Shown one piece after another: positions 36,422-61,691 of a DNA stretch of 64,000 nucleotides. The stretch covers positions 151,396 through 215,395 of IMG/VR virus record IMGVR_UViG_3300018004_000004; one strand, written 5' to 3'. The position numbers were made by a program, and so were the translations under genes. The notes beneath the pieces were generated by a model, which was given only the letters and a program-made list of their open reading frames with translations, ran no database searches and was not told where the DNA came from. How positions within the stretch are numbered: the first letter of the stretch is position 1; every line of letters begins with the position of its first letter.

Positions 36422-37402
36422 ATGACCGACGAACTTGTCAGCAATCAGTTTATACCTTGGCCTCTTGTCAGCAATCAGTTTATACCTTGGCCTCTTGGAA
36501 AAGAGAAGCCAAAGAGAAAGTGCAAGATTATCGTTAATATAGGTCTGCCTGGCTGCGGGAAGACTACGGAAACCCGTGAGCTCATGAAGACCGACGGTAA
36601 TCTGATGAGGGTTAATCGAGATGATCTTCGGAATATGCTCTTCTCCCGTTGGAAGGGGCGTAAGGAGTCGGTTGTCACCGACCTCGAGGCACAGGCTATC
36701 AGAGCTGCTATCCATTATGGATACGACATCATTATCGATGACACCAACCTCAATCCGGGTACCTTGGCGAAGTGGAAGAATCTGGCCAACGAGCTCGGAG
36801 TTCCTCTGGTGGAGAAAAGCTTCGACGTTCCGATCGAGGTGTGCATCGAAAGGGATGTACAGAGAACTGGCCGAGCTCATGTGGGACGTGGAGTTATAGA
36901 GAATATGGCCCTGACTTATGGGCTTATTCCTAAACTCGATCCTGAACAGAAGGTCGTGATCTTTGACATGGATGGCACCATGGCAGATCAGACCGTTCGC
37001 AGGCAGTACATTGAAGGCGAGCACAAGGATTACGATCTGTACTACAACTATGTGAGTATCCTGGGTGATACTCCTGTTGGAGTAGTCATTGACTGGTGCA
37101 ATGCCTGCTATGCAGATGGGCTGATAGTCCTTGTCGTTTCCGGCCGGCCGGCAGATAGGGCAAGCGATGCTACAGTTGACTGGCTTCGTATGTATGGCGT
37201 CAACTATCATCGCCTCTTCATGCGCCCCGGAGGGGACTTCCGAGATGATGACATCATCAAACAGGAGATCCTGGACAAGATCCTGAAGTGGATCAACAAG
37301 GATCAGATCCTGTTTTCCGTGGACGACCGCCCACGAATCATTCGTATGTGGCAACTGAATGGTATTACATGCTATGATGTTGGGAAGGGAGTCGAGTTCT
37401 GA
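36422..37402 (+). CDS. pseT: Polynucleotide 5'-kinase/3'-phosphatase (T4 PseT-like)
   Basis: P-loop GLPGCGKTT, RVNRDDLR, DDTN; HAD DMDGT, VSGR, DDR. Confidence 0.93.
   Translation: MTDELVSNQFIPWPLVSNQFIPWPLGKEKPKRKCKIIVNIGLPGCGKTTETRELMKTDGNLMRVNRDDLRNMLFSRWKGRKESVVTDLEAQAIRAAIHYGYDIIIDDTNLNPGTLAKWKNLANELGVPLVEKSFDVPIEVCIERDVQRTGRAHVGRGVIENMALTYGLIPKLDPEQKVVIFDMDGTMADQTVRRQYIEGEHKDYDLYYNYVSILGDTPVGVVIDWCNACYADGLIVLVVSGRPADRASDATVDWLRMYGVNYHRLFMRPGGDFRDDDIIKQEILDKILKWINKDQILFSVDDRPRIIRMWQLNGITCYDVGKGVEF
36434..36497 (+). repeat. Perfect 30-bp tandem duplication in the PNKP N-terminus
   Basis: cttgtcagcaatcagtttataccttggcct x2 plus cttg. Confidence 0.95.
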
Positions 37403-38197: not shown

Positions 38198-38273
38198 GGT
38201 GGATATAGGACAGCGGTTAGTCCGCCGGATTGTGGCTCCGGACACGTCGGTTCGAATCCGACTATCCACCCCA
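38198..38273 (+). tRNA. tRNA-His(GUG) with encoded G-1 and CCA
   Basis: G+GTGGATA/TATCCAC, C73, anticodon arm CCGGA-TTGTGGC-TCCGG, TTCGAAT loop. Confidence 0.95.
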
Positions 38274-42321: not shown

Positions 42322-42653
42322 GCTGGTGTCCTGGCGATTTAACAGCCTGCCGGCCGAAAGAGGGACATAAGGCCGTCATGTATTTTGTGAATGGTGAACA
42401 CTTCTGGTTCCATCTCAGGGACCATGAGTTCGAAGCGATCTTTGGGAGGATCAATGATCAAGGACAACTTTAACCGTACGATCCGAACCGCGGATAAAAC
42501 GGTGATCAACATCTCCGCGCAGCACGTCGGAGAGTTTCCAGAATGTGAGTTGAGAGCAGGTATATCACCATTCTATTTTCTCTTGACTACAGCACAGGTG
42601 AAGAAACTCATCAAAGCTTTGCAAGCTTATCTAACTTACAGGGAGAAACAGTG

Positions 42654-43937
42654 ATGGATGGTTGGGAAGGGGGCTTTGACGCTCCCGCAGTAAAAAGCAC
42701 GCATCAATGCGAGATCGTAAAGGTGTATCCCAAGGTACACCCGAATGCAGACAGATTGGAGGTCGCAGAAGTAGGTGGCTATTCCGTATGTGTGGGTAAG
42801 GGGGATTTTTGGGACGGTGAACTCGGGATATACATCCCTCCGGATAGTATCGTACCCGCGATCCCGGGGTTCAGCTTTGTGTGGGAAGGTAAAGGCTACA
42901 TTCCCGATTCGATTCCTGCTGGCAGCACGGCGGTTCCTGAAGTACCCCAGAAATACCGCAGAATCAAAGCTAAGACTCTTCGCGGAGTAATCTCCGAAGG
43001 TCTTTTGATTCCTATTCCGCAGACGAAGGACTTCATCGATCAACAAGGTGAGTGCTTCTTCAAAGAAGGAGATGACGTTGCGAAGGTCCTTGGTGTTACC
43101 CACTACGATCCACCGGATACGACGTCGTTGGGCGGCGATACCGAAGCTGCCCCTGGAAAGAGCGGAAAGAAGAGACGTTATCCGAAGTCTCTACGCGGAT
43201 GGTTTCGCTTCTTACTATCGAAAGTGGCTTTTTGGCGGCATCCGGTGGATGCCCAAGAGAGTACGAGCCTGGATATCCCAGACTACGACGTCGACGCCTG
43301 GCAGAAGTTCCGTGGAGCCCTGATAGAAGGCGAAGAAGTATGGATCACCGAGAAGATCCACGGGGCTAATAGCCGATTTGTTTATATAAGAGAAGCTGGT
43401 AGTGCTGCTTACGCTGGTCGTATGTACTGCGGTAGCCACCACCAATGGAAGAAGGAACTTCCTGGTTCTGCTTGGTGGACTTGCCTCAAACAGAACCTCT
43501 GGATCGAGGAGTTCTGTAGGCAATATCCCGGTCATGTTCTATATGGTGAACTGGTTCCTACCCAGAAGCCTTACATGTACGGGCAGAAGGATGGCAAGTA
43601 CCGTTTGTTCGCCTTCGACGTCTTTGATCTTTCTCGGCGTTGCTTTCTGAGCTACTCCGATCTCCTTGATCTGACGTGGTGCCATCTGTACGCGGAAGGC
43701 GAAGACTTCCAAGCGCGCGGCATCTTGAATGAAGTCCACTGGGTACCTACACTCTTTAGAGGGCCGTATGACCCTGGCGCCATGAGGACCTTGGCTGAGG
43801 GAGTTTCCATGGTTCCTCATGCCAGTCACATTCGTGAAGGGATGATCATTAAGCCTCTCACGGAACGTCGCGACAATCGTATGGGTCGCGTGATCATGAA
43901 GCTCAAGTCCGTGAAGTTCCTGGAGAAGGACAAATGA
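42654..43937 (+). CDS. RNA ligase, DRB0094 family
   Basis: N-terminal HPNADRLE...LRGVISEGLL; TEKIHG, LYGE, FAFD, REGMIIKP, K.KS. Confidence 0.9.
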   Translation: MDGWEGGFDAPAVKSTHQCEIVKVYPKVHPNADRLEVAEVGGYSVCVGKGDFWDGELGIYIPPDSIVPAIPGFSFVWEGKGYIPDSIPAGSTAVPEVPQKYRRIKAKTLRGVISEGLLIPIPQTKDFIDQQGECFFKEGDDVAKVLGVTHYDPPDTTSLGGDTEAAPGKSGKKRRYPKSLRGWFRFLLSKVAFWRHPVDAQESTSLDIPDYDVDAWQKFRGALIEGEEVWITEKIHGANSRFVYIREAGSAAYAGRMYCGSHHQWKKELPGSAWWTCLKQNLWIEEFCRQYPGHVLYGELVPTQKPYMYGQKDGKYRLFAFDVFDLSRRCFLSYSDLLDLTWCHLYAEGEDFQARGILNEVHWVPTLFRGPYDPGAMRTLAEGVSMVPHASHIREGMIIKPLTERRDNRMGRVIMKLKSVKFLEKDK

Positions 43938-47341: not shown

Positions 47342-48562
47342 ATGAAACTACCTGAACTGCTCAACACTGAGCTTCTCTGGGAGCATATCCTGAAGGGAGT
47401 AGTCTCCAGGACACAGCACCCTCAGTATCCTGAGCTCTGGGTATATAACTATACTCATGTGGCTCAGCATGACAACGTCTGGGATGACGTAACAGAACAG
47501 TGCCGCGGCTTGATTTGCCGACAGGACTGCGCTACTAGTGATTGGCATATGTGGCTCCTGAATCATCAGGAGGTCATTGCCAGGCCATTCCGTAAGTTCT
47601 TTAATCTGAACACAGGCTTCCGCCCAGAGACTCTCGAAGCTAACCTTCCGTCCTGGAAGCCTCGAGTCCTTGAAAAGCTCGATGGGTCTCTGGGAATCCT
47701 ATTCTGGCATACACACTTCCGAGAGGCTTTCATTGCCACCCGCGGGTCGTTTGCCTCCGAACAAGCTATCTGGGCCACTAAGTGGTACCGAGCTAGGTTT
47801 GGTAACTGGCCTGTTGCTGACTCGGCCAGCTGGCCAAAAGGCTACACGCCTCTCTTTGAAATCATCTACGATGAGAACAGGATTGTGGTGAACTATGACT
47901 ACCAAGCCCTTGTTCTTCTGGGCCTCGTCAACATCGCTACTGGTGCTGAGCTACCGCCTGAGGAAGTGGTTCTCTGGGCAAATAAGAACGGCCTACGAGT
48001 GCCCACTGAATATGCCAAGTCACTTGAGGAATGTAAATCCGAAGAGAGCAAGAATATTGAAGGTTTTGTTCTCCAGTATTGGAATCCCGAAACCAAAGTG
48101 CCCTTTCGGCTCAAGATCAAGACGGAGGATTATATAAGGCTTCACAAGGTGATTACTGGCCTGAATCCTAAAGGAGTATGGGAACATCTCTCTGAAGGAT
48201 ACGACCCGGCAGCTCTTTGGATGCCTGCCCTTCAGAATAAGCAGTTCGTAAGCTGGTGTCAAGGATGGATCAAGACATTCCAGGATCTTTATGCCAAGTA
48301 CGAGAGTGAAGCGATTACTGCGTTTGGCCAGGCATCAATCAAGGCTCTTGCGGGACTGCGGTTGGAAAAGTCCCCTGACGCAAGGCTTGTTCGGAAGCAC
48401 TATGCTCTGGCTTTTCAGGCGGAGGACTCGAAGTATCAGCCCACCTTCTTTGCCATGCTGGACGGCAAGGATTTCAAGAAGTGTCTCTGGGCCTTGTTAG
48501 AACCTAAAATCCAAGGGAAGGATGTGTTCATTCGCGATGCAGACACCAACAACGGAATATAG
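47342..48562 (+). CDS. T4 Rnl1-like RNA ligase
   Basis: YNYT, CRGLI, ARPFRKFFN, EKLDGSL, ATRGSF, FEII, EGFV, KIK. Confidence 0.92.
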   Translation: MKLPELLNTELLWEHILKGVVSRTQHPQYPELWVYNYTHVAQHDNVWDDVTEQCRGLICRQDCATSDWHMWLLNHQEVIARPFRKFFNLNTGFRPETLEANLPSWKPRVLEKLDGSLGILFWHTHFREAFIATRGSFASEQAIWATKWYRARFGNWPVADSASWPKGYTPLFEIIYDENRIVVNYDYQALVLLGLVNIATGAELPPEEVVLWANKNGLRVPTEYAKSLEECKSEESKNIEGFVLQYWNPETKVPFRLKIKTEDYIRLHKVITGLNPKGVWEHLSEGYDPAALWMPALQNKQFVSWCQGWIKTFQDLYAKYESEAITAFGQASIKALAGLRLEKSPDARLVRKHYALAFQAEDSKYQPTFFAMLDGKDFKKCLWALLEPKIQGKDVFIRDADTNNGI

Positions 48563-48751
48563 TCCGATCGTGCAGTGGCGTCTTAACGAGAAGCTCCAGG
48601 GGAGCTACTACGTTAAGTATGGCACTGGAGATATTGCCTGGAAGAAGATTGACACGGATACTGCTCAGATGTTGCTAGCAGTAGGTTGCGTATCTTTGCC
48701 TCCACTTCTGGCCGGGCCGGCATACACAGGCAGAATGGTACAAGTCTACGT

Positions 48752-49459
48752 ATGAGCGACGGTATTGGGATACGGATGAAGGAGCAGTATGAGAATAGGT
48801 CTCTTTGCTTATTGCCGAGACGCACTTATACCATCATCCGTGCCGACGGGAAAGCCTTCCATTCCTATACTCGAAAGCTCAGCCGTCCTTTTGATAGCCT
48901 GCTCATCCAGTGCATGGATCGGGCGGCTATCACGATGTGCGAGAGTATACAAGGGACGAATCTTGGGTATGTACAGTCCGACGAGATATCGCTGATTCTG
49001 ACGGACTTTGCTACCAAAGACACGGCGGCCTGGTATGACAACAACTTACAGAAGATTGTATCTGTCGCGGCCAGCATCGCTACGATGGCTTTTAACGAGA
49101 GGGCCCGAGAGCTTGGGCTTCATCCAACGGCTACGTTTGATGCTCGGGCGTTCGTTATACCCGATCGCGAAGAAGTTATGAACTACTTCGTGTGGCGCCA
49201 GCAAGACGCAACACGAAATAGCATTCAGTCTGTAGCTCAGTCAATGTACTCGCCAAAGGAACTGCATGGCAAGAACTGTGATATGCTACAGGAGATGATC
49301 TTCCAGAAAGGAACGAACTGGAATGACTTGGCGCCCATTCTCAAGCACGGCCGCGCAATCATTAAAACTGAACAGGGCTGGGAAGCCGATAGCAACACCC
49401 CTGTATTTACTCAAGATAGAGCATATCTTGGCCAAAGGATACCAGTTCCCGGGTACTAA
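48752..49459 (+). CDS. Thg1-like tRNA(His) guanylyltransferase / 3'-5' polymerase
   Basis: IRADGKAFH, YVQSDEISL, FDAR, WRQQDATRNS. Confidence 0.93.
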   Translation: MSDGIGIRMKEQYENRSLCLLPRRTYTIIRADGKAFHSYTRKLSRPFDSLLIQCMDRAAITMCESIQGTNLGYVQSDEISLILTDFATKDTAAWYDNNLQKIVSVAASIATMAFNERARELGLHPTATFDARAFVIPDREEVMNYFVWRQQDATRNSIQSVAQSMYSPKELHGKNCDMLQEMIFQKGTNWNDLAPILKHGRAIIKTEQGWEADSNTPVFTQDRAYLGQRIPVPGY

Positions 49460-49516: not shown

Positions 49517-50074
49517 ATGGCGGTAGTTCCTGTCCGTAAGCCTGTATTCACGCTGCCTGGGGTTGTTCTAAGCAATCCCAAGTATGCTCATAACGTAGCA
49601 TCTGCTATTCGTGCTTGCAGCTGCTTTGGTATTACCACAATGCTCTGGACGGGGAAGCGTGTTGATCCAACTACCATGGATCGTCTTCCCCGTGAAGAGC
49701 GAATGAAGGGGTATAAAGATGTCTACTGGGAGACGAACGAACGCCCATTTGATCTTTTTCCTGACTCGGTCCCAGTCTGCGTTGAGCTTGTGCCACACGC
49801 TGAGAACCTTGCATCATTCGATCATCCGGAGAAAGCTCTTTACGTCTTCGGACCCGAAGACGGGTCAGTCACTCAAGTATTTCGAATGCATTGCCATCGC
49901 TTCATCTTCATTCCTTCTGCGCATTGTCTCAACCTGTCGGCGGCCCTCAATGTGATTCTATACGATCGACGGGTCAAGCGTATTGCTGCGGGACTCGAGA
50001 GTCCCGTTATGGCTGAAATACTCCAGGAAACGCGCGGAGGTAACATCGATGTTCCCGGATGGGACGGGAAATGA
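49517..50074 (+). CDS. SpoU/TrmH-family RNA 2'-O-methyltransferase
   Basis: NPK..HNVASAIRAC..FG, VFGPEDGS, CLNLSAA.NVILYDR. Confidence 0.88.
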   Translation: MAVVPVRKPVFTLPGVVLSNPKYAHNVASAIRACSCFGITTMLWTGKRVDPTTMDRLPREERMKGYKDVYWETNERPFDLFPDSVPVCVELVPHAENLASFDHPEKALYVFGPEDGSVTQVFRMHCHRFIFIPSAHCLNLSAALNVILYDRRVKRIAAGLESPVMAEILQETRGGNIDVPGWDGK

Positions 50075-50507
50075 AGCGACTACCGCCTTATGAGAAGCCT
50101 TATCCTAAATGGACTGTCTGGGAGAAGTTACTAAGTAAGCCCAGGTGGGGATACATTGGACGTCTCTTGCTTCCCAGATATCCAAAGGATCTACGATGAG
50201 TTGGTGGTGTATTTTTGGTTCTTTGGCAGGTGGCCGGCGAATATGTCGTATTCAGCTTCGCAAGAATATTCGCTATTGGCGAGGGAGATGGCCCACACTG
50301 CGGAAGAGTTTCTAGGAGGACGCATGGACGTTGGCAAAGTCAAAGGCGCGATCAATGAGATCTTTGAGAGCCTGAGCATCGAGCAGCTTCTCAAGTTCCG
50401 CGATCGCATGAAGGTAGTACATGCCGAGCAGCTGGCGGCAATCAACGCAACCCTGGCAAAGAAGGGCCACGTTGAACCACACCTGGTGAATGTGCAAGAG
50501 CACAACA

Positions 50508-50999
50508 GTGAATAAGATCTCTGAGTTCCAAGGTCCTTGGAGAGAGTTCTCTAACTTTGAGGGCCCGCCGGTGCAGTATGGAATGATGATCTACGATCAT
50601 ATAGAAAATGCATACCATGCTGCTAAGTCCTTGGATTTCAACGTTCGGCGGAAGTTCATGCACCTACCGGCCGCTGAAGCCAAGAAGCTGGGACGAGAGA
50701 TAGAATGCCGGGCTGACTGGGAGAAGGTCAAGCTTGCAGTTATGGAGATTCTCGTGCGGGAGAAGTTCCTACACCGTAAGCCTTTAGGCCTTTTGCTCGC
50801 CAGCGGCAATATGATCATCGAAGAAGGCAACACTTGGCATGACAACTACTGGGGTAGCTGTCGATGCCCGAAGTGTGCTGACAAGGAAGCCTACAATCAC
50901 CTGGGCAATCTTTTGATGAAGCTCCGTGGTGAGATGCAAAACTTCGATATGATCTATCGACAAAGAGAGTACATAGAGAAGGCGTCCCTTCTATACTAA
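50508..50999 (+). CDS. NADAR (YbiA-like) protein
   Basis: FSNF, ENAYHAAK, AKKLGR, DWE.VK..VM, KF, IEEGNTWHDNYWG, NHLG.LLM. Confidence 0.9.
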   Translation: MNKISEFQGPWREFSNFEGPPVQYGMMIYDHIENAYHAAKSLDFNVRRKFMHLPAAEAKKLGREIECRADWEKVKLAVMEILVREKFLHRKPLGLLLASGNMIIEEGNTWHDNYWGSCRCPKCADKEAYNHLGNLLMKLRGEMQNFDMIYRQREYIEKASLLY

Positions 51000-51798: not shown

Positions 51799-52710
51799 AA
51801 GGAGAGACTATGTCAGAAGAAGTCCATAAGCACTATCACAGTGATGGTATTGGGATAGGCACAATCATTGCAGGTATCCTGTCATGGTTGAAGTGGCACA
51901 GCATCGGCTGGCTCATTATCCATGCTTTGTTTGGGTGGTTGTATGTTATCTACTACCTGATCAAGTTCGGATTTCCGTATCAGTTGTTCCAATGAAGAAA
52001 GTCTTTAAGGTCCGCCTTGGTAATGACGGGGCGGAGAACTACCTCGAGAGACAGTACTTAAGAGGTCCGTGGGAGATAGGCGAGTGGGTCAAGGTAACGA
52101 TCCAATCTGTCCGCCGTAAGAAGGCAGTGTGTCGAAAGAAACCTGGAATCGTCCTTATCGGTTCATGAAGTGCGCAATGCTGCGCGCGGACTTTTATCGA
52201 TTGGATCCGAATATCTGGGGCCACCTGCGCTGCACCTGGAGGTTCTTTGATAAGTACGTCATGTTTCGAAGGATCGGCAGATGGATGCTCCCTTAGCTCC
52301 GATTAAGACCATATCCAGGTTCTACAAAGGACATTGGTTGAGGCTAGCTATTAGCTGGCGCTTCTGGGGTAAGTATGGCGGTAAGCGCATCGAAGCGCAA
52401 ATCAGGAAATGGAAAGAGGAAGCATTTGGATAAGCAACAAATCAACGTAGGTGTTGGCGGAGTTATGAGTGTGCCGGCACCAGCACCAGTTCTAATGGAA
52501 AGTTTCGAACAGCTCGAACAAGAGCTTTTGAATGGGCATTCGAACTTCATTATGTGCTATGAGGCACATAAGACGGATCCTGAGACTAAAATCCAGGAGA
52601 CGATCACGATCAAGAATGAGATGCCGATTCCCAATGATGAGCCTATGGCTTTCGCCCTTGTGGAGTTGGCAATGCGGAATCCTAGGGTTAGGATTCTGAA
52701 GGTTTGAGAG

Positions 52711-53353
52711 ATTGGTGGGCCGGACGGCCGCGGGCGCAAGCTCGAGGAAAATAGGGCCATCATAGAGCAAAGGAACCGATGAAAGTCGGGGGTCGAAAGG
52801 CTACGAGGTACGGGAGGTTACTAACCTAATCCCTTCCTGATGCAAACCCAAATAGGACGGTGAGACTGCTCGTCGTTGTAACCCGTCGGGTAGGGTGCAT
52901 TGGACAATCTAATGAATACGTACAAAACTCGGAAAGCGAGAAATCAGAAACGTTGGAGAAAGAGCCCAGCGGGCATTAAATACCTGAAGAGTAAGGCTTT
53001 CCGAGATAGTACGCGTGAGTCAAATAGGAAACGTGATAGGGAATATCGAGCTGAAATCCAGAGAAGGGTTAGAGCCGAGAAACTAAGGAGAGGTTGTAAG
53101 AGGTGTAAGTATCACAAACACTTCGCTGCCTTAGAGTTCCATCATCGGAATCCTAAGCTCAAAAAGTTTAGATTGTCCGAAAGCAGAAACTACTCTTGGC
53201 CTATGGTCCAGAAAGAAATGGCAAAGTGCGATGTTTTATGCGCTAACTGCCACGCCATTCTGGAGTTCAGAAAGCTACAGAGGAAAGCTTCTGCTTAGAC
53301 GGATGGCCGTCGCCTCGCAAGAGGCACAGGAGCCCTTTTATAGGCCCACCAGT
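52711..53353 (+). ncRNA. rnpB: Divergent minimal bacterial type-A-like RNase P RNA, interrupted at P18 by an HNH ORF
   Basis: P1 52711-21/53343-53; P2 gacggcc/ggccgtc; P3 with GCAA loop; GAGGAAAAU then P4 AAA-U-AGGGC/GCCCU-UUU; P5 catc/gatg; P6 gagc/gctc; P7 aggaa/ttcct; P8; P9 GAAA; P15 accc/gggt with AAAUAG/GGGUA loop; P16; UAGACGGAU J18/2; P19; ACAGGA. Confidence 0.9.
52912..53298 (+). CDS. HNH endonuclease embedded in the RNase P RNA gene
   Basis: Basic N-terminus; GCKRC...ALEFHHRNP...KCDVLCANCH. Confidence 0.9.
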   Translation: MNTYKTRKARNQKRWRKSPAGIKYLKSKAFRDSTRESNRKRDREYRAEIQRRVRAEKLRRGCKRCKYHKHFAALEFHHRNPKLKKFRLSESRNYSWPMVQKEMAKCDVLCANCHAILEFRKLQRKASA

Positions 53354-53368
53354 ACAGATCGGAGAACC

Positions 53369-53701
53369 GTGGCTAATCAACAGCCTAGATATGATCCTCC
53401 AGGAGGAGTAGAAGCTCTTCTGACTGCTCTTGAGAAGTCTCTTCGCAATGGCTATTATAGCGTTGAGGCAGAAGAGAAAGATCTGGTTGATGCGAAGAAA
53501 GATCTGGCTAATAAGAAAGCATCTTATGAGTATGCGCTGGCTTCTGTGGCAGAACATGAGATGAAGGTAAAGAAAGCTCGCCGTAAAGCAGCGGAGATTG
53601 TCAATGCTCTCGGCAAGCTGGATTGTCCTGAAGAAGTTATCAAGGCGTCGTGTAAGCCTTTGAATGCACATGACATTGCTGAATGGATTAGGGCCGAGTA
53701 G
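53369..53701 (+). CDS. Hypothetical coiled-coil protein; stop codon inside tRNA-Ile
   Basis: GGAG RBS with GTG at 53369. Confidence 0.65.
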   Translation: MANQQPRYDPPGGVEALLTALEKSLRNGYYSVEAEEKDLVDAKKDLANKKASYEYALASVAEHEMKVKKARRKAAEIVNALGKLDCPEEVIKASCKPLNAHDIAEWIRAE

Positions 53702-57319: not shown

Positions 57320-58039
57320 ATGCCGAAACTGCTGGCGTGGAATCTTTCCCGCCTGAAAACGAAATCCCGCCCGTTGACCGGGCCACTTCCTGAGCTCTAT
57401 GTCAGGGAACTTACACGCATGGTGGAGGAGCTAAATGGCGTCTACCTTTCTGGGATACAAGTGGGGGATCCGCGGAGATTCGCTATCCCTAACCCTCGCT
57501 TCAAAGATTTCCCGATATTGTACAATCCTGAGATTATTGCACAGGACGACCCCATACGAGGAGAAGGTGAAGGGTGTCTTAGCTTTCCCGGCTTGTGGGT
57601 TCCGGTATCACGGTACACATACGTTACAGTGAGGTATCGAGATGGCCAATGGCAAGAGAGAACTGCCGTATTTGGTAATGAGGATCCCAATACTGAGGAA
57701 GCGCTCCTTGCTAAGGCTGTCCAGCACGAAGTAGCTCACATGGATGGCATTGTCCTCCATGATCGTATTGCGGACCCACAGAAGAGGATAAAGATCTATG
57801 CTCAGATTCTTCGGGAGTCCCTTGCCCAGAACAGATCTAGAGGGATACCTCAACTTTTGGAAGGCCCATCCGAAATGGATCCTCTTACTGTGTCGATCGT
57901 CGCGGTTTCTCCGGAGCCGGTACTCGGCGATCAAGAGCAAGCGAGTGTTGGAAATGATGAAACTGTTCATGAGCCCAATGTGAATGGAGATCAACCCAGT
58001 GAAGTGGAAAACACCGCCTCCGAAGCCAGTAACTCCTGA
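57320..58039 (+). CDS. def: Peptide deformylase
   Basis: GVYLSGIQVG (variant motif 1), EGCLSFPG, QHEVAHMDG. Confidence 0.9.
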   Translation: MPKLLAWNLSRLKTKSRPLTGPLPELYVRELTRMVEELNGVYLSGIQVGDPRRFAIPNPRFKDFPILYNPEIIAQDDPIRGEGEGCLSFPGLWVPVSRYTYVTVRYRDGQWQERTAVFGNEDPNTEEALLAKAVQHEVAHMDGIVLHDRIADPQKRIKIYAQILRESLAQNRSRGIPQLLEGPSEMDPLTVSIVAVSPEPVLGDQEQASVGNDETVHEPNVNGDQPSEVENTASEASNS

Positions 58040-59386: not shown

Positions 59387-60460
59387 ATGATCAATACCAT
59401 CGCTTGTACGCCAGGTAAGCTCCCCAAGCTACTTGACTATCTGTACAAGTTGAAGTATGCTGCATTCTTGTGGGGCGAGCCTGGTGTAGGTAAGTCAATG
59501 TCCATCTGGGACTGGACTAAGGACAGAAAGATGAGACTGGAAGATATCCGGCTGACACAGTTGGATGGACCAGATCTCAGAGGTCTACAGTGGATCGATG
59601 AGAAGACTGGTATCACCCGGGCTTTCCGTCCGGAGTTCTTCCCGATCGAAGATGTCCCTGGCTGTATCTTCCTGGATGAGCTGACTGCCGCGGAACCGCG
59701 GATGCAAGCAACAGCATACCAGCTAGTCCTTGACCGTAAGATTGGCAAGTATGAACTTCCTTCTCAGTGGATGGTCCTGGGCGCCGGCAACAGTCCTGAG
59801 GATGGCGCCATCAGTTATAAGATGGGATCCGCATTGTCGGATCGCTTCGTCCACATCCACGTGGTGGCAGATCCTATTGACTGGGGTAACTGGGCAATGG
59901 AACACAATGTCCATGTCACAGTACTGGCTTTCATTCGTGTGAAGCCTCAGTTCCTTACCTGTGTCGGCGGCGTAGCGAAGACGAACCAGTTGATTGTTCC
60001 GTCTCCTCGTAGCTGGGCACGCGTCTCTGAAGTGATGCACACAGTAGAGGATAAGACATCCAACTCTATTCTTATCAATGGTATAGTGGGTGAAGCTGCC
60101 GCAGTAGAGTTCATCCATACCACTGAGGAGATCGGTGAGCTTCCGACCATGGAAGATCTGCTGAGCCACCAGAGGCCTGAGTTTGCAGTCAAGCACATCC
60201 CGAATAAGATTGCTTGTCTCTATGGTCTTGCTTATAGCATGGCTGCCTACGTTACGCGGCCGGACCAAATCAGCAAGGCTATGTTTATCTTTGACGCGCT
60301 CCGTCATAAGGTCACCAATCAGCCGGTGGCTGAGATCGAAACGCTGGCAAATGAAATGATCCTGGCAAAGGCGGTGAAACTTGGTATCATTGAACAGGTT
60401 GTCCGCACAGAGGGGTATCTTAACTACGCCCCGCGTGCCAAAGAAATCGTCCGAAGTTAA
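59387..60460 (+). CDS. MoxR-like AAA+ ATPase
   Basis: GEPGVGKS, DLRG, IFLDE, GAGN, ALSDRF, SPRSW. Confidence 0.92.
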   Translation: MINTIACTPGKLPKLLDYLYKLKYAAFLWGEPGVGKSMSIWDWTKDRKMRLEDIRLTQLDGPDLRGLQWIDEKTGITRAFRPEFFPIEDVPGCIFLDELTAAEPRMQATAYQLVLDRKIGKYELPSQWMVLGAGNSPEDGAISYKMGSALSDRFVHIHVVADPIDWGNWAMEHNVHVTVLAFIRVKPQFLTCVGGVAKTNQLIVPSPRSWARVSEVMHTVEDKTSNSILINGIVGEAAAVEFIHTTEEIGELPTMEDLLSHQRPEFAVKHIPNKIACLYGLAYSMAAYVTRPDQISKAMFIFDALRHKVTNQPVAEIETLANEMILAKAVKLGIIEQVVRTEGYLNYAPRAKEIVRS

Positions 60461-61691
60461 GAAGTCAGGGCTGAATCAGGACCAGAAGAAGGACATGGTC
60501 ACACTACTCATTCGAAGACTCGTTACTCGAGACTCCGGTGTAGCTGGCCTGGTTCTCTGGGTTCCGACGGCCCTGGGAAGAGACGATCAACATGCTTATG
60601 CGTACACAGACGGTACCTCTATATACTTCTGTGATCCATTCTTCACTGTCGACGAGTCCGTCCAATATGCGATCATCTTGCACGAACTCCTCCACATTGT
60701 ACTCCGACACGCACATCGGACCAGGCAAATACGGCTGTCTAAGGGAGATAAGTTTAGCCCGGACATCGCCAACGCTTGCGCGGATGCTATTGTCATACGC
60801 GCGATCATGCAGCAGAAAAAGATCGGACCGCTGTCTGTGGTCAATCCTTACATTATCACCGCTGAAAACCTTGTTAGTGCGGAGGATCTTAAGAAGGTCC
60901 CCGCTCCTCAGTGGACATTTGAAATGCTTTACAACTACGTCGAAAAGCGGGTTGATAAAGCAGTCCGTGACTTTATTAATCAGCATGCCAAAGAGTTAAG
61001 CGATGATCTCATCCCGCCGAACCAAGATTCAGCAGCTGATCCACACATGGATGAAGTCCAAACACGCGTATGGAAGGAACGACTTAAGCGTGCTGCTTAT
61101 GGTTCTGAGCCGGGGTCTTTTCTGCGCGAGGTTCTCAAGGACCTACCAGATTCTACGACGCCATGGGAAAAGCATTTCAGAGACTTCATGGTCTCACACG
61201 TCATGCCCACCACCTGTCTTGATTGGGGCCGCCCTTCACGACGACTACTTGCGTCAAAAGGAAGGCTTGGCTATTACGAACCAGGAATCCAGCGAGAGCT
61301 CGGAGTAAAGAGGGCTGGTATCTGTATTGATACCTCGGGCTCGATCGATGATCCTCTATTGCAGATCTTCATCGCCGAGACCAACTCCATTATGGAGCAG
61401 ACTGGGTGTTCGGTCGTTGTTATCTGTGCTGACGCCGCGGTCCAAAGCGTCCAGGTGTTCCAGCAATCCATAGACGCACACTATGAATGCAAGGGCGGAG
61501 GTGGAACTGATTTCCGGCCGGCATTGAAAGAGATGGAGAAGTATGACGTAGACTGTTGTGTCTACCTCACTGACATGGCCGGAACATTCCCGGATAAAGC
61601 TCCGCCCTTCCCTGTGATGTGGGCTACATGTGTTGATCAAGACCCTCCGTTTGGCCGCAAGGTCTACGTGGATCCATTGATAGGCCGATGA
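60435..61691 (+). CDS. DUF2201-type metallopeptidase plus VWA domain protein
   Basis: AYTDG, HELLH, NACAD, W.RPSRR, IDTSGSI, GGGGTDFRP, YLTD. Confidence 0.9.
   Translation: MPKKSSEVKKSGLNQDQKKDMVTLLIRRLVTRDSGVAGLVLWVPTALGRDDQHAYAYTDGTSIYFCDPFFTVDESVQYAIILHELLHIVLRHAHRTRQIRLSKGDKFSPDIANACADAIVIRAIMQQKKIGPLSVVNPYIITAENLVSAEDLKKVPAPQWTFEMLYNYVEKRVDKAVRDFINQHAKELSDDLIPPNQDSAADPHMDEVQTRVWKERLKRAAYGSEPGSFLREVLKDLPDSTTPWEKHFRDFMVSHVMPTTCLDWGRPSRRLLASKGRLGYYEPGIQRELGVKRAGICIDTSGSIDDPLLQIFIAETNSIMEQTGCSVVVICADAAVQSVQVFQQSIDAHYECKGGGGTDFRPALKEMEKYDVDCCVYLTDMAGTFPDKAPPFPVMWATCVDQDPPFGRKVYVDPLIGR

Follow-up and report, generated by a model that had tools for sequence, protein, structure and literature searches.

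A large environmental phage carries a shrunken, miniaturised RNase P RNA gene of bacterial type A that is split by a 396-bp cassette holding a short leader and an HNH endonuclease open reading frame (ORF), with no sign of an intron, and related phages have the same ribozyme gene without the insert. We found no description of this arrangement in the literature searched. The locus was analysed within a 64,000-nt stretch (the window; positions 151,396 to 215,395 of IMG/VR record IMGVR_UViG_3300018004_000004), and all of the features described here lie on the plus strand. Window positions 52711-52898 and 53295-53353 are the two halves of the RNA, which would be about 247 nt long without the insert, and the cassette occupies 52899-53294. 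Every part of the original prediction that sequence data can test, namely a phage RNase P RNA with an HNH ORF between J15/18 and J18/2, the conserved UAG of J18/2 serving as its stop codon, and no intron signature around the insert, held up. Two corrections apply, however. The ORF had been proposed to replace helix P18, but this RNA family natively lacks P18 and the ORF therefore sits where P18 would be rather than replacing it. In addition, the S-domain is also reduced, P12-P14 being absent, which had not been mentioned.

Identification of the RNA rests on covariance-model searches, in which Rfam RF00010 matches 52730-52917 with an E-value of 2.3e-15 (53.2 bits, model positions 19-313). The window allele alone falls below the gathering score of 100 bits because the insert breaks the alignment, and the placement of J18/2 at 52908-17 in this match was rejected because that segment is the leader of the insert and not the true J18/2. 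Importantly, L083, the full-length one of three metagenome contigs carrying the gene without the insert, gives a full-length match of 114.3 bits (E 1.3e-34), and L090, a contig representing a second lineage with a 397-nt insert at the same junction, still scores 104.6 bits across that insertion at the P18 position. The 5' segment comprises the 5' strands of P1 (52711-21) and P2 (52723-29), P3 (52731-44), J3/4 and the 5' strand of P4 (52744-57), P5, the 5' strand of P6 (52765-69), P7, P8 (52776-89), P9 (52790-804), a short P10-like hairpin (52812-33), J5/15 with its GCAA, P15, P16/17 carrying the 3' strand of P6 (52867-71), and the L15 GGGUA (52888-92). The 3' segment comprises J15/2, which is equivalent to J18/2 (UUAGACGGAU, 53295-304), the 3' strand of P2 (53305-11), the P19 hairpin (53312-25), the ACAGGA motif and the 3' strand of P4 (53332-39), and the 3' strand of P1 (53343-53). 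The two segments pair with each other across the insert through 11 pairs in P1, 7 pairs in P2, and 8 pairs between 52749-57 and 53332-39 in P4, with a bulged U at 52752.

The helices are maintained by many compensatory changes. Every helix is canonical in five alleles, with two-sided compensatory changes in P1, P2, P4, P5, P7, P8, P15, P16 and P19, and the five pairs of the P6 pseudoknot are retained with an A-U changed to G-U in L083. Moreover, RNAalifold analysis of 12 insert-less relatives shows compensatory changes in 30 of 41 pairs; in this alignment all 8 P4 pairs are kept, 5 of them with two-sided changes, and P2 is 7/7 canonical in every sequence that covers both strands (11 of 12). 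The plain minimum-free-energy fold recovers P1, P3, P8-P10, P15 and P19 but not P2, P5, P7 or P16, and is not used as evidence for the core. With respect to the missing elements, between 87 and 97 model positions of the specificity domain (P10-P14 with the T-loop recognition module) are replaced by 13-21 nt and the 24 P18 positions by 0 nt, the empty alleles reading GGGUAGGGUGC followed directly by UUAGACGG across the junction. Such reductions occur in accepted members of the family (PMC8172020) and do not exclude membership, although they do mark a reduced variant in which loss of the usual T-loop recognition module (P12-P14) means that substrate recognition may be poor or may depend on a protein. 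A crude RnpA motif search of all ORFs in the 64-kb window, which covers only part of the 215-kb contig, gave nothing.

The ORF (52912-53298) encodes a 128-aa protein that matches PHROG 2255 (E 1.4e-23) and PHROG 3106 (E 2.3e-22), both annotated as HNH endonuclease, although Pfam PF01844 gives only E 0.025, below its cut-off. Residues C62, C65, H77, H78, C106, C110, N112 and H114 are invariant in 18 homologues. An AlphaFold2 model (pLDDT 95.5) predicts a C-terminal beta-beta-alpha unit, with strands at 74-78 and 106-110 followed by a helix at 111-127; a PDB sequence search with the HNH profile gave no hit, however, and a Foldseek search gave nothing significant, its top hits being HNH nucleases (Cap5, T4 endonuclease VII, Gme HNH, the Cas9 HNH domain) but all with E >= 0.3. 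The ORF is under purifying selection, with dN/dS of 0.12 and dS of 1.37 between the window and L090 copies.

The boundaries of the insert are fixed by the empty alleles L083, L086 and L087, with a 3-nt TGC ambiguity at the junction. The cassette consists of a 13-nt leader with a weak ribosome-binding site (GGACAA) and the body of the HNH ORF, with no promoter or terminator of its own. The TAG stop codon at 53296-98 lies outside the insert and is native ribozyme sequence, because the empty alleles also read UUAGACGGAUG there. An 11-bp perfect helix between 52902-52912 (GGACAAUCUAA) and 53168-53178 (UUAGAUUGUCC), the latter arm lying inside the ORF in the codons for the FRLSE motif, appears in the minimum-free-energy fold and covers the ribosome-binding site and the A of the AUG. 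The duplex energy is -20.4 kcal/mol against -12.1 +/- 2.0 for codon-shuffled ORFs, with 0 of 300 shuffles as strong, and L090 has the equivalent helix at the same ORF position with one compensatory pair, although the start-site helix is not significant in the related insert-bearing lineage L111.

The insert carries the marks of a mobile element. It is 99.5% identical (394/396) between the window and L085, a contig from a second insert-bearing phage, whereas the ribozyme flanks are 93.1% and 89.8% identical; the contrast between 2/396 differences in the insert and 19/247 in the flanks is significant (Fisher p = 7e-7). In addition, the 5' flank of L085 is closer to the empty alleles (5 differences) than to the window (12 differences). 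Homologues of 56-74% identity sit at the same junction in L090, L094, L110, L111 and L112, and others sit just after the RNA in L091, L093, L095, L098, L107 and L113; this HNH clade lives on phage RNase P RNA genes either at the internal junction, with six RNA lineages found, or immediately 3' of the RNA. The HNH tree does not resolve whether the internal position arose once or several times. Moreover, lineages with the HNH downstream keep an intact junction sequence, and the junction may therefore not be the cleavage site.

The RNA gene heads a tRNA array inside a tRNA repair and maturation island. Downstream are phage tRNA genes for Ile (53692-767), Leu (54140-228), Lys (55104-180), Met (56280-357) and Cys (58200-274), identified with ARAGORN and Rfam, which are the likely substrates. 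All six phage tRNAs encode a 3' CCA, which fits the retained L15 GGU that binds CCA in type-A RNase P RNA. The window also encodes a polynucleotide kinase, RNA ligases, a Thg1-like enzyme, a SpoU methylase and a tail fibre protein. A scan for promoters and terminators found nothing above the shuffled expectation next to the RNA, so co-transcription with its neighbours is only inferred.

At least 26 IMG/VR viral contigs carry mini RNase P RNAs of this kind; in one junction-pattern scan, 21 of the 22 IMG/VR contigs matched carry P18-less forms. Other searches were less productive. Searches with blastn of the locus, of 24 kb around it, and of a second-type RNA against 50,697 GenBank phage records gave no match, and neighbouring ORFs used as protein probes in IMG/VR, like a 19-nt conserved stretch, found only the two contigs identical to the window. 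A general mini-RNase-P pattern in IMG/VR found only those two contigs plus one chance hit, and a pattern allowing a 380-410 nt gap at the junction gave 8 chance matches, only L001 and L002 being real. The general pattern applied to 185,579 species genomes returned 75 loci, mostly ordinary bacterial RNase P RNAs matched through an S-domain GAGGAAA, with a few genuinely reduced bacterial forms and some chance matches, none of which has this P4.

Taken together, these data make it all but certain that the locus is an RNase P RNA gene and very probable that the insert is a mobile HNH cassette without an intron. We infer that the cassette spreads by endonuclease-triggered recombination between co-infecting phages (intron-less homing), that it is transcribed as part of the ribozyme precursor, and that its translation is damped by the helix that buries the start site. 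We also infer that the ribozyme core still assembles because P1, P2 and P4 (26 pairs) clamp the two halves together, the active form then being either a 643-nt RNA with the mRNA as an expansion segment or two non-covalently held pieces. No activity or expression data exist for any of these RNAs, and it seems only somewhat more likely than not that the insert-bearing allele still yields an active ribozyme.

The most serious alternative, which we regard as unlikely but possible, is that the insertion inactivated the gene, so that insert-bearing alleles are dead ribozyme genes persisting only because the endonuclease keeps invading fresh functional alleles while the phage relies on the RNase P of its host. 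The two closest insert copies are recent, and their intact flanks prove little about decay after insertion; empty alleles coexist in the same habitat; and deleting P18 or disrupting the P8/P18 contact in E. coli lowers activity (PMC5839562, PMC8457005), so that the site is not entirely neutral. Nevertheless, six diverged ribozyme lineages carry the ORF at this junction, each with intact, lineage-specific compensated P1, P2 and P4, and L090 passes the Rfam threshold across its insert. The HNHs of the window, L090 and L110 form a clade with 100/99 support, which, with the dS between the window and L090 copies, indicates that the internal arrangement is old, yet no flank shows decay. The cassette also lands exactly where a helix is naturally present or absent, and leaves J18/2 untouched. 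An unrecognised self-splicing or protein-assisted intron is very unlikely, although homing endonuclease genes in RNA genes are normally carried by introns and sequence alone cannot exclude an unknown kind of splicing. No group I or group II model hits 52600-53450 even at E <= 10, the ORF fills 383 of the 396 nt and leaves no room for a ribozyme core, and none of the four possible boundary pairs gives a 5' exon ending in U together with an intron ending in G (group I), nor GUGYG...AY (group II). Furthermore, the stop codon of the ORF lies in the "exon", and the same HNH clade also occurs as a free-standing gene after the RNA; a bulge-helix-bulge intron was likewise rejected. Finally, although all of the data are metagenomic, chance resemblance, an assembly artefact or contaminating host DNA is contradicted by the presence of the same allele in at least four independent assemblies plus a diverged copy, by the E-values (1e-15 to 1e-34) and extensive covariation, by the location of identical DNA in IMG/VR viral contigs of 110 and 215 kb with phage genes, and by the absence of any cellular RNase P RNA with this P4 among the species genomes scanned.

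The closest known systems each share some of these properties. [quoted passage not shown] The phage RNA has the same core (P1-P5, the P6 pseudoknot, P7-P9, P15-P17, the J3/4 GAGGAAA, the bulged U in P4, the L15 GGU and the ACAG.A motif) but is encoded by phages next to tRNA arrays, and some alleles carry a protein gene inside. Its P4 sequence, which in cells appears to be nearly invariant, varies widely by compensatory change, being AAUAGGGC/GCCCUUUU in the window. Free-standing phage homing endonucleases that sit between or beside conserved genes, such as T4 SegB in the tRNA gene cluster (PMC2330249), T4 MobE (PMC2790892) and the HNH genes beside bacterial long tRNA arrays (PMC8421152), are likewise small nuclease genes without an intron that are linked to tRNA-related loci, polymorphic among related phages and of low divergence relative to their flanks, and the relatives downstream of the RNA (L091, L095 and others) fit this pattern exactly. 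Here, however, the gene lies inside an RNA gene rather than between genes and uses the UAG of the host RNA as its stop; SegB, moreover, is a GIY-YIG enzyme and not an HNH. Intron-encoded homing endonucleases in tRNA and rRNA genes also place a nuclease ORF in a structural RNA gene at a conserved site, with empty alleles as presumed targets, but nothing indicates that the present RNA is re-joined. A precedent for the two-piece outcome is perhaps provided by the ORF-bearing intervening sequences in bacterial 23S rRNA helices, which appear to be excised by RNase III without re-ligation to leave an RNA that works as non-covalently held fragments. Those inserts, however, seem to be flanked by long stems that RNase III cuts and not to encode nucleases, whereas no long basal stem is predicted here and the host RNA is a trans-acting ribozyme.

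A more far-reaching reading, which remains tentative, is that the 643-nt transcript is both an active trans-acting ribozyme, working either intact or as two pieces held together by P1, P2 and P4, and the messenger for its resident homing endonuclease, and that phages with tRNA arrays commonly bring their own stripped-down RNase P RNA so that tRNA supply is independent of the host. This would be the first natural case of a protein gene living directly, without an intron, inside a ribozyme that keeps working, and would define a previously unrecognised viral class of RNase P. RNase P RNA is one of the two ribozymes thought to be universal in cells, and we found no description of a virus-encoded one in the literature searched. 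The phage RNAs are natural minimal type-A forms of about 250 nt whose P4 helix varies freely by compensation, giving a ready-made data set on what the catalytic core really needs. The P18 junction is a candidate site for engineering cargo into RNase P RNA, and the HNH clade is a candidate set of nucleases specific for RNase P RNA genes. The nested HNH gene suggests that a selfish nuclease gene can colonise a catalytic RNA without an intron, by choosing the one junction where extra RNA points away from the core, which is a new kind of refuge for homing endonucleases and a natural test of how much foreign RNA a ribozyme tolerates.

Examination of the region 52711-53353 shows that the sequence is as described in the original prediction, with the 188 nt before the insert and the 59 nt after it pairing across it. 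P1 is formed by 52711-21 / 53343-53 (11 pairs), P2 by 52723-29 / 53305-11 (7 pairs), and P4 by 52749-57 / 53332-39 (8 pairs around a bulged U). Scanning the window against Rfam at the curated threshold finds only six tRNAs. A permissive scan of 52600-53450, however, gives RF00010, bacterial RNase P class A, at 52730-52917 with an E-value of 2.3e-15 and 53.2 bits, and in this match 97 model positions of the specificity domain are replaced by 21 nt and P18 is missing. The ORF at 52912-53298 is an HNH endonuclease, which matches PHROG 2255 at E 1.4e-23, although the match to Pfam PF01844 is only marginal (E 0.025). A second, larger HNH endonuclease in the window (60381-61691; 436 aa; PHROG 1314, E 2.4e-44), which is unrelated in size to the one in the ribozyme, lies just after an ATPase gene (59387-60460).

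The window is phage DNA. Identical sequence lies in two IMG/VR viral contigs of 110 and 215 kb, and the window encodes a tail-fibre-like protein and two DNA-ligase-like proteins together with six tRNAs, all of which have an encoded CCA. The ribozyme gene sits at the head of the tRNA array and is surrounded by a dense island of tRNA and translation-related genes (36422-37402, 42651-43937, 47342-48562, 48686-49459, 49517-50074, 50490-50999 and 57320-58039), which holds a T4-type polynucleotide kinase, two RNA ligases, a Thg1-like 3'-5' nucleotidyltransferase, a SpoU-type methylase, a NADAR protein and peptide deformylase, and which looks like a tRNA repair and maturation module. Interestingly, the phage tRNA-His begins with an encoded extra G (GTGGATA...CCACCCCA), and the phage also encodes the Thg1-like enzyme (38199-38273 and 48686-49459, respectively); the mini RNase P may leave G-1 in place, or the Thg1-like enzyme may add or repair it. 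No GenBank phage record resembles the locus. We saw only one copy of the ribozyme gene in the window, and only one pattern match in each of the two IMG/VR contigs that carry this locus.

A metagenome scan with a pattern built from universal type-A motifs plus the unusual P4 start returned seven loci. Two of these (L084 and L088) carry the insert and are identical to the window, and a third (L085) is a diverged copy that also carries the insert. The insert is absent from L083, in which the RNA is full-length, from L086, in which the 5' end is cut by the contig, and from L087, in which the 3' end is cut by the contig; the remaining locus (L089) is a chance match and not an RNase P RNA. In the empty alleles ...GGGUAGGGUGC is followed directly by UUAGACGGAUGG..., and BLAST of L086 against the window places the insert at 52899-53294 (396 bp), with a 3-nt TGC overlap. 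These alleles effectively provide the comparison, proposed with the original prediction, of scanning the locus with and without the insert. L083 gives a full-length RF00010 match of 114.3 bits (E 1.3e-34), above the gathering score of 100, while the truncated L087 and L086 give 80.7 and 67.4 bits, respectively. Importantly, the 24 model positions of P18 are matched by 0 nt in these alignments. The family has no P18, so the cassette occupies the P18 position rather than replacing a helix. The TAG of the ORF (53296-98) is the UAG of the native J18/2 sequence and lies outside the insert. In addition, the first bases of the insert (AUUGGACAAUCUAAUGAAU, window 52899-52917) resemble the J18/2 sequence that follows it, to the extent that the covariance-model scan aligned UCUAAUGAAU to the J18/2 consensus and MAFFT aligned UUAGACGGAU of the empty alleles to it. 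This could be a remnant of a duplicated target, or a coincidence.

The RNA is under selection for the RNase P fold. In five distinct alleles every pair of P1-P10, P15-P17, P19, P4 and P6 is canonical, with the exceptions of a shared U.C pair at the base of P16, an alignment shift in L083 caused by a bulged A in P1 and a 1-nt gap in P7, and one A.A pair closing P19 in L083. Two-sided compensatory changes occur in P1, P2, P4, P5, P7, P8, P15, P16 and P19, and some of these lie in helices that span the insert, namely C-G to U-A in P1, three pairs in P2, and C-G to A-U in P4. Moreover, an alignment of 12 insert-less phage RNAs gave an RNAalifold consensus in which 30 of 41 pairs show compensatory change; P4 has 8 pairs, none broken, of which 5 are changed on both sides, and P2 is 7/7 canonical in every sequence that covers both strands (11 of 12). 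Relative to the cellular consensus, P4 in the window has changed from AAGUCCGG/CCGGCUU to AAUAGGGC/GCCCUUUU and is fully compensated.

The insert behaves as a mobile element. Between the window and L085 it differs at 2 of 396 positions, whereas the ribozyme flanks differ at 13/188 and 6/59 positions (Fisher test, p = 7e-7) and the neighbouring ORFs are about 94% identical. The nearest flank differences lie 36 nt upstream and 18 nt downstream of the junctions. In addition, the 5' flank of L085 is closer to the empty alleles L086 and L087 (5 differences) than to the window (12 differences), and the insert therefore has a different history from its surroundings.

A protein search identified 83 homologues, and we examined the genomic context of eleven of them. 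The HNH clade lives on phage RNase P RNA genes. At the same internal junction, the locus L090 (74% identity) has a 397-nt insert, and RF00010 still aligns the full model across it at 104.6 bits. Four other loci (L094, L110, L111 and L112) also carry the ORF between the P15 3' strand and J18/2, with the 3' part of the ribozyme following the ORF, although L110 is cut at its 5' end by the contig and most of its 5' ribozyme part is missing. The stop codon varies with lineage, being the UAG of UUAGA in the window, L090 and L110, the UGA of GAAUGA in L094 and L111, and an own TAA in L112. In a second group of loci (L091/L092, L093, L095, L098, L113 and L107) the gene lies immediately after the RNA 3' end, and a more distant HNH sits there in L083. 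Of these, L091 (2882-2942), L093 (174-235), L095 (2795-2856) and L113 (about 290-355) share a conserved leader with a promoter-like TTTTGTACGTACA stretch, a GGGGGAG...CTCCCCC hairpin, and then ACTCTTTCACGGAGAG before the ATG, and the internal cassettes lack this leader. Weak, sub-threshold matches to the Y RNA-like YrlA (36.9 bits, gathering score 69) and to tmRNA (28.2 bits, gathering score 47) lie within the same phage tRNA arrays (L091 1198-1336 and 3674-3748, also L092 1642-1716). One homologue (L096, 49% identity) has no RNase P RNA in the 10.4-kb locus around it. The six internal lineages have very different ribozyme sequences, each with intact P1, P2 and P4 that differ by compensation. 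The HNHs of the window, L090 and L110 form a clade with 100/99 support, while the positions of the other internal copies are unresolved. dN/dS between the window and L090 copies is 0.12 at dS 1.37, and the embedded ORF has therefore been translated and selected over a long time.

The insert is not an intron, given that no intron family matches the region even at E <= 10, that only 13 nt of the insert is non-coding, that none of the four boundary pairs allowed by the TGC ambiguity fits the group I rule (5' exon ending in U and intron ending in G) or the group II rule, and that the stop codon lies in the flanking RNA. At the RNA level, an 11-bp perfect helix is predicted to pair the leader and start codon (52902-12) with codons 86-89 of the ORF (53168-78), and this helix is much stronger than in codon-shuffled controls (z = -4.2, 0 of 300 shuffles as strong). 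Comparable helices are predicted in L094 (z = -3.2), L090 and L112 (z about -2.1), but not in L111, and L090 uses the same ORF position with one compensatory pair. These predictions suggest that translation of the nuclease is held down in the folded RNA. The ribosome-binding site is GGAGAA in L090 and L094 but GGACAA in the window. No long basal stem of the kind cut by RNase III is predicted.

The RNA is a member of RF00010 in a reduced form. Some Candidate Phyla Radiation bacteria also lack P12-P14 and P18 (PMC8172020), and RNase P RNAs identified in five Elusimicrobia genomes (L011, L035, L046, L048 and L063) have a short specificity domain and no P18 (GGGUAGGCCGCAAAGAUAAAUGACCG...), making them natural cellular counterparts of the phage architecture. 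P18 normally docks on P8 to orient the two domains, and its loss is tolerated but costly in E. coli (PMC5839562, PMC8457005). The nuclease resembles free-standing phage homing endonucleases such as T4 SegB in the tRNA cluster (PMC2330249) and MobE (PMC2790892), and HNH genes also accompany bacterial tRNA arrays (PMC8421152). We could not, however, find a description of a virus-encoded RNase P RNA, or of a protein gene nested without an intron in a ribozyme gene, in a literature search that did not extend to most subscription journals and so does not prove novelty. The original prediction of an RNase P RNA gene carrying an HNH ORF is confirmed, and the interpretation placed on it is supported with two corrections, in that P18 is natively absent and the S-domain is reduced, although catalysis by these mini RNAs, the fate of the chimeric transcript (intact, cut into two pieces, or dead) and the target of the nuclease are inferred.

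Two further scans of IMG/VR found a second sequence type in 9 viral contigs and P18-less junctions in 22 viral contigs, of which 21 are real ribozyme genes. Several of the second-type RNAs (L101, L103, L104 and L105/L108) have a much enlarged P3, with 45-60 extra nt between P2 and J3/4. In contrast to its relatives, which lack it, the RNA in L095 (2700-2740) keeps a P18-like hairpin with a GUAA loop after GGGUAGCGGGC, and P18 is therefore variably present within the phage RNAs. The P4 helix takes many sequences across the phage RNase P RNAs in the IMG/VR viral contigs L101-L129 (for example L114, L117, L118, L126 and L127), including GUCCGAGC, GUCAGGAC, GUUCAGAC, GUUCCUGC and GGUCGGGAC, each matched by its 3' partner. 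Phage RNase P RNAs are common: with the two contigs identical to the window, at least 26 viral contigs of 20-215 kb carry such genes, and their P4 sequences vary widely but always pair.
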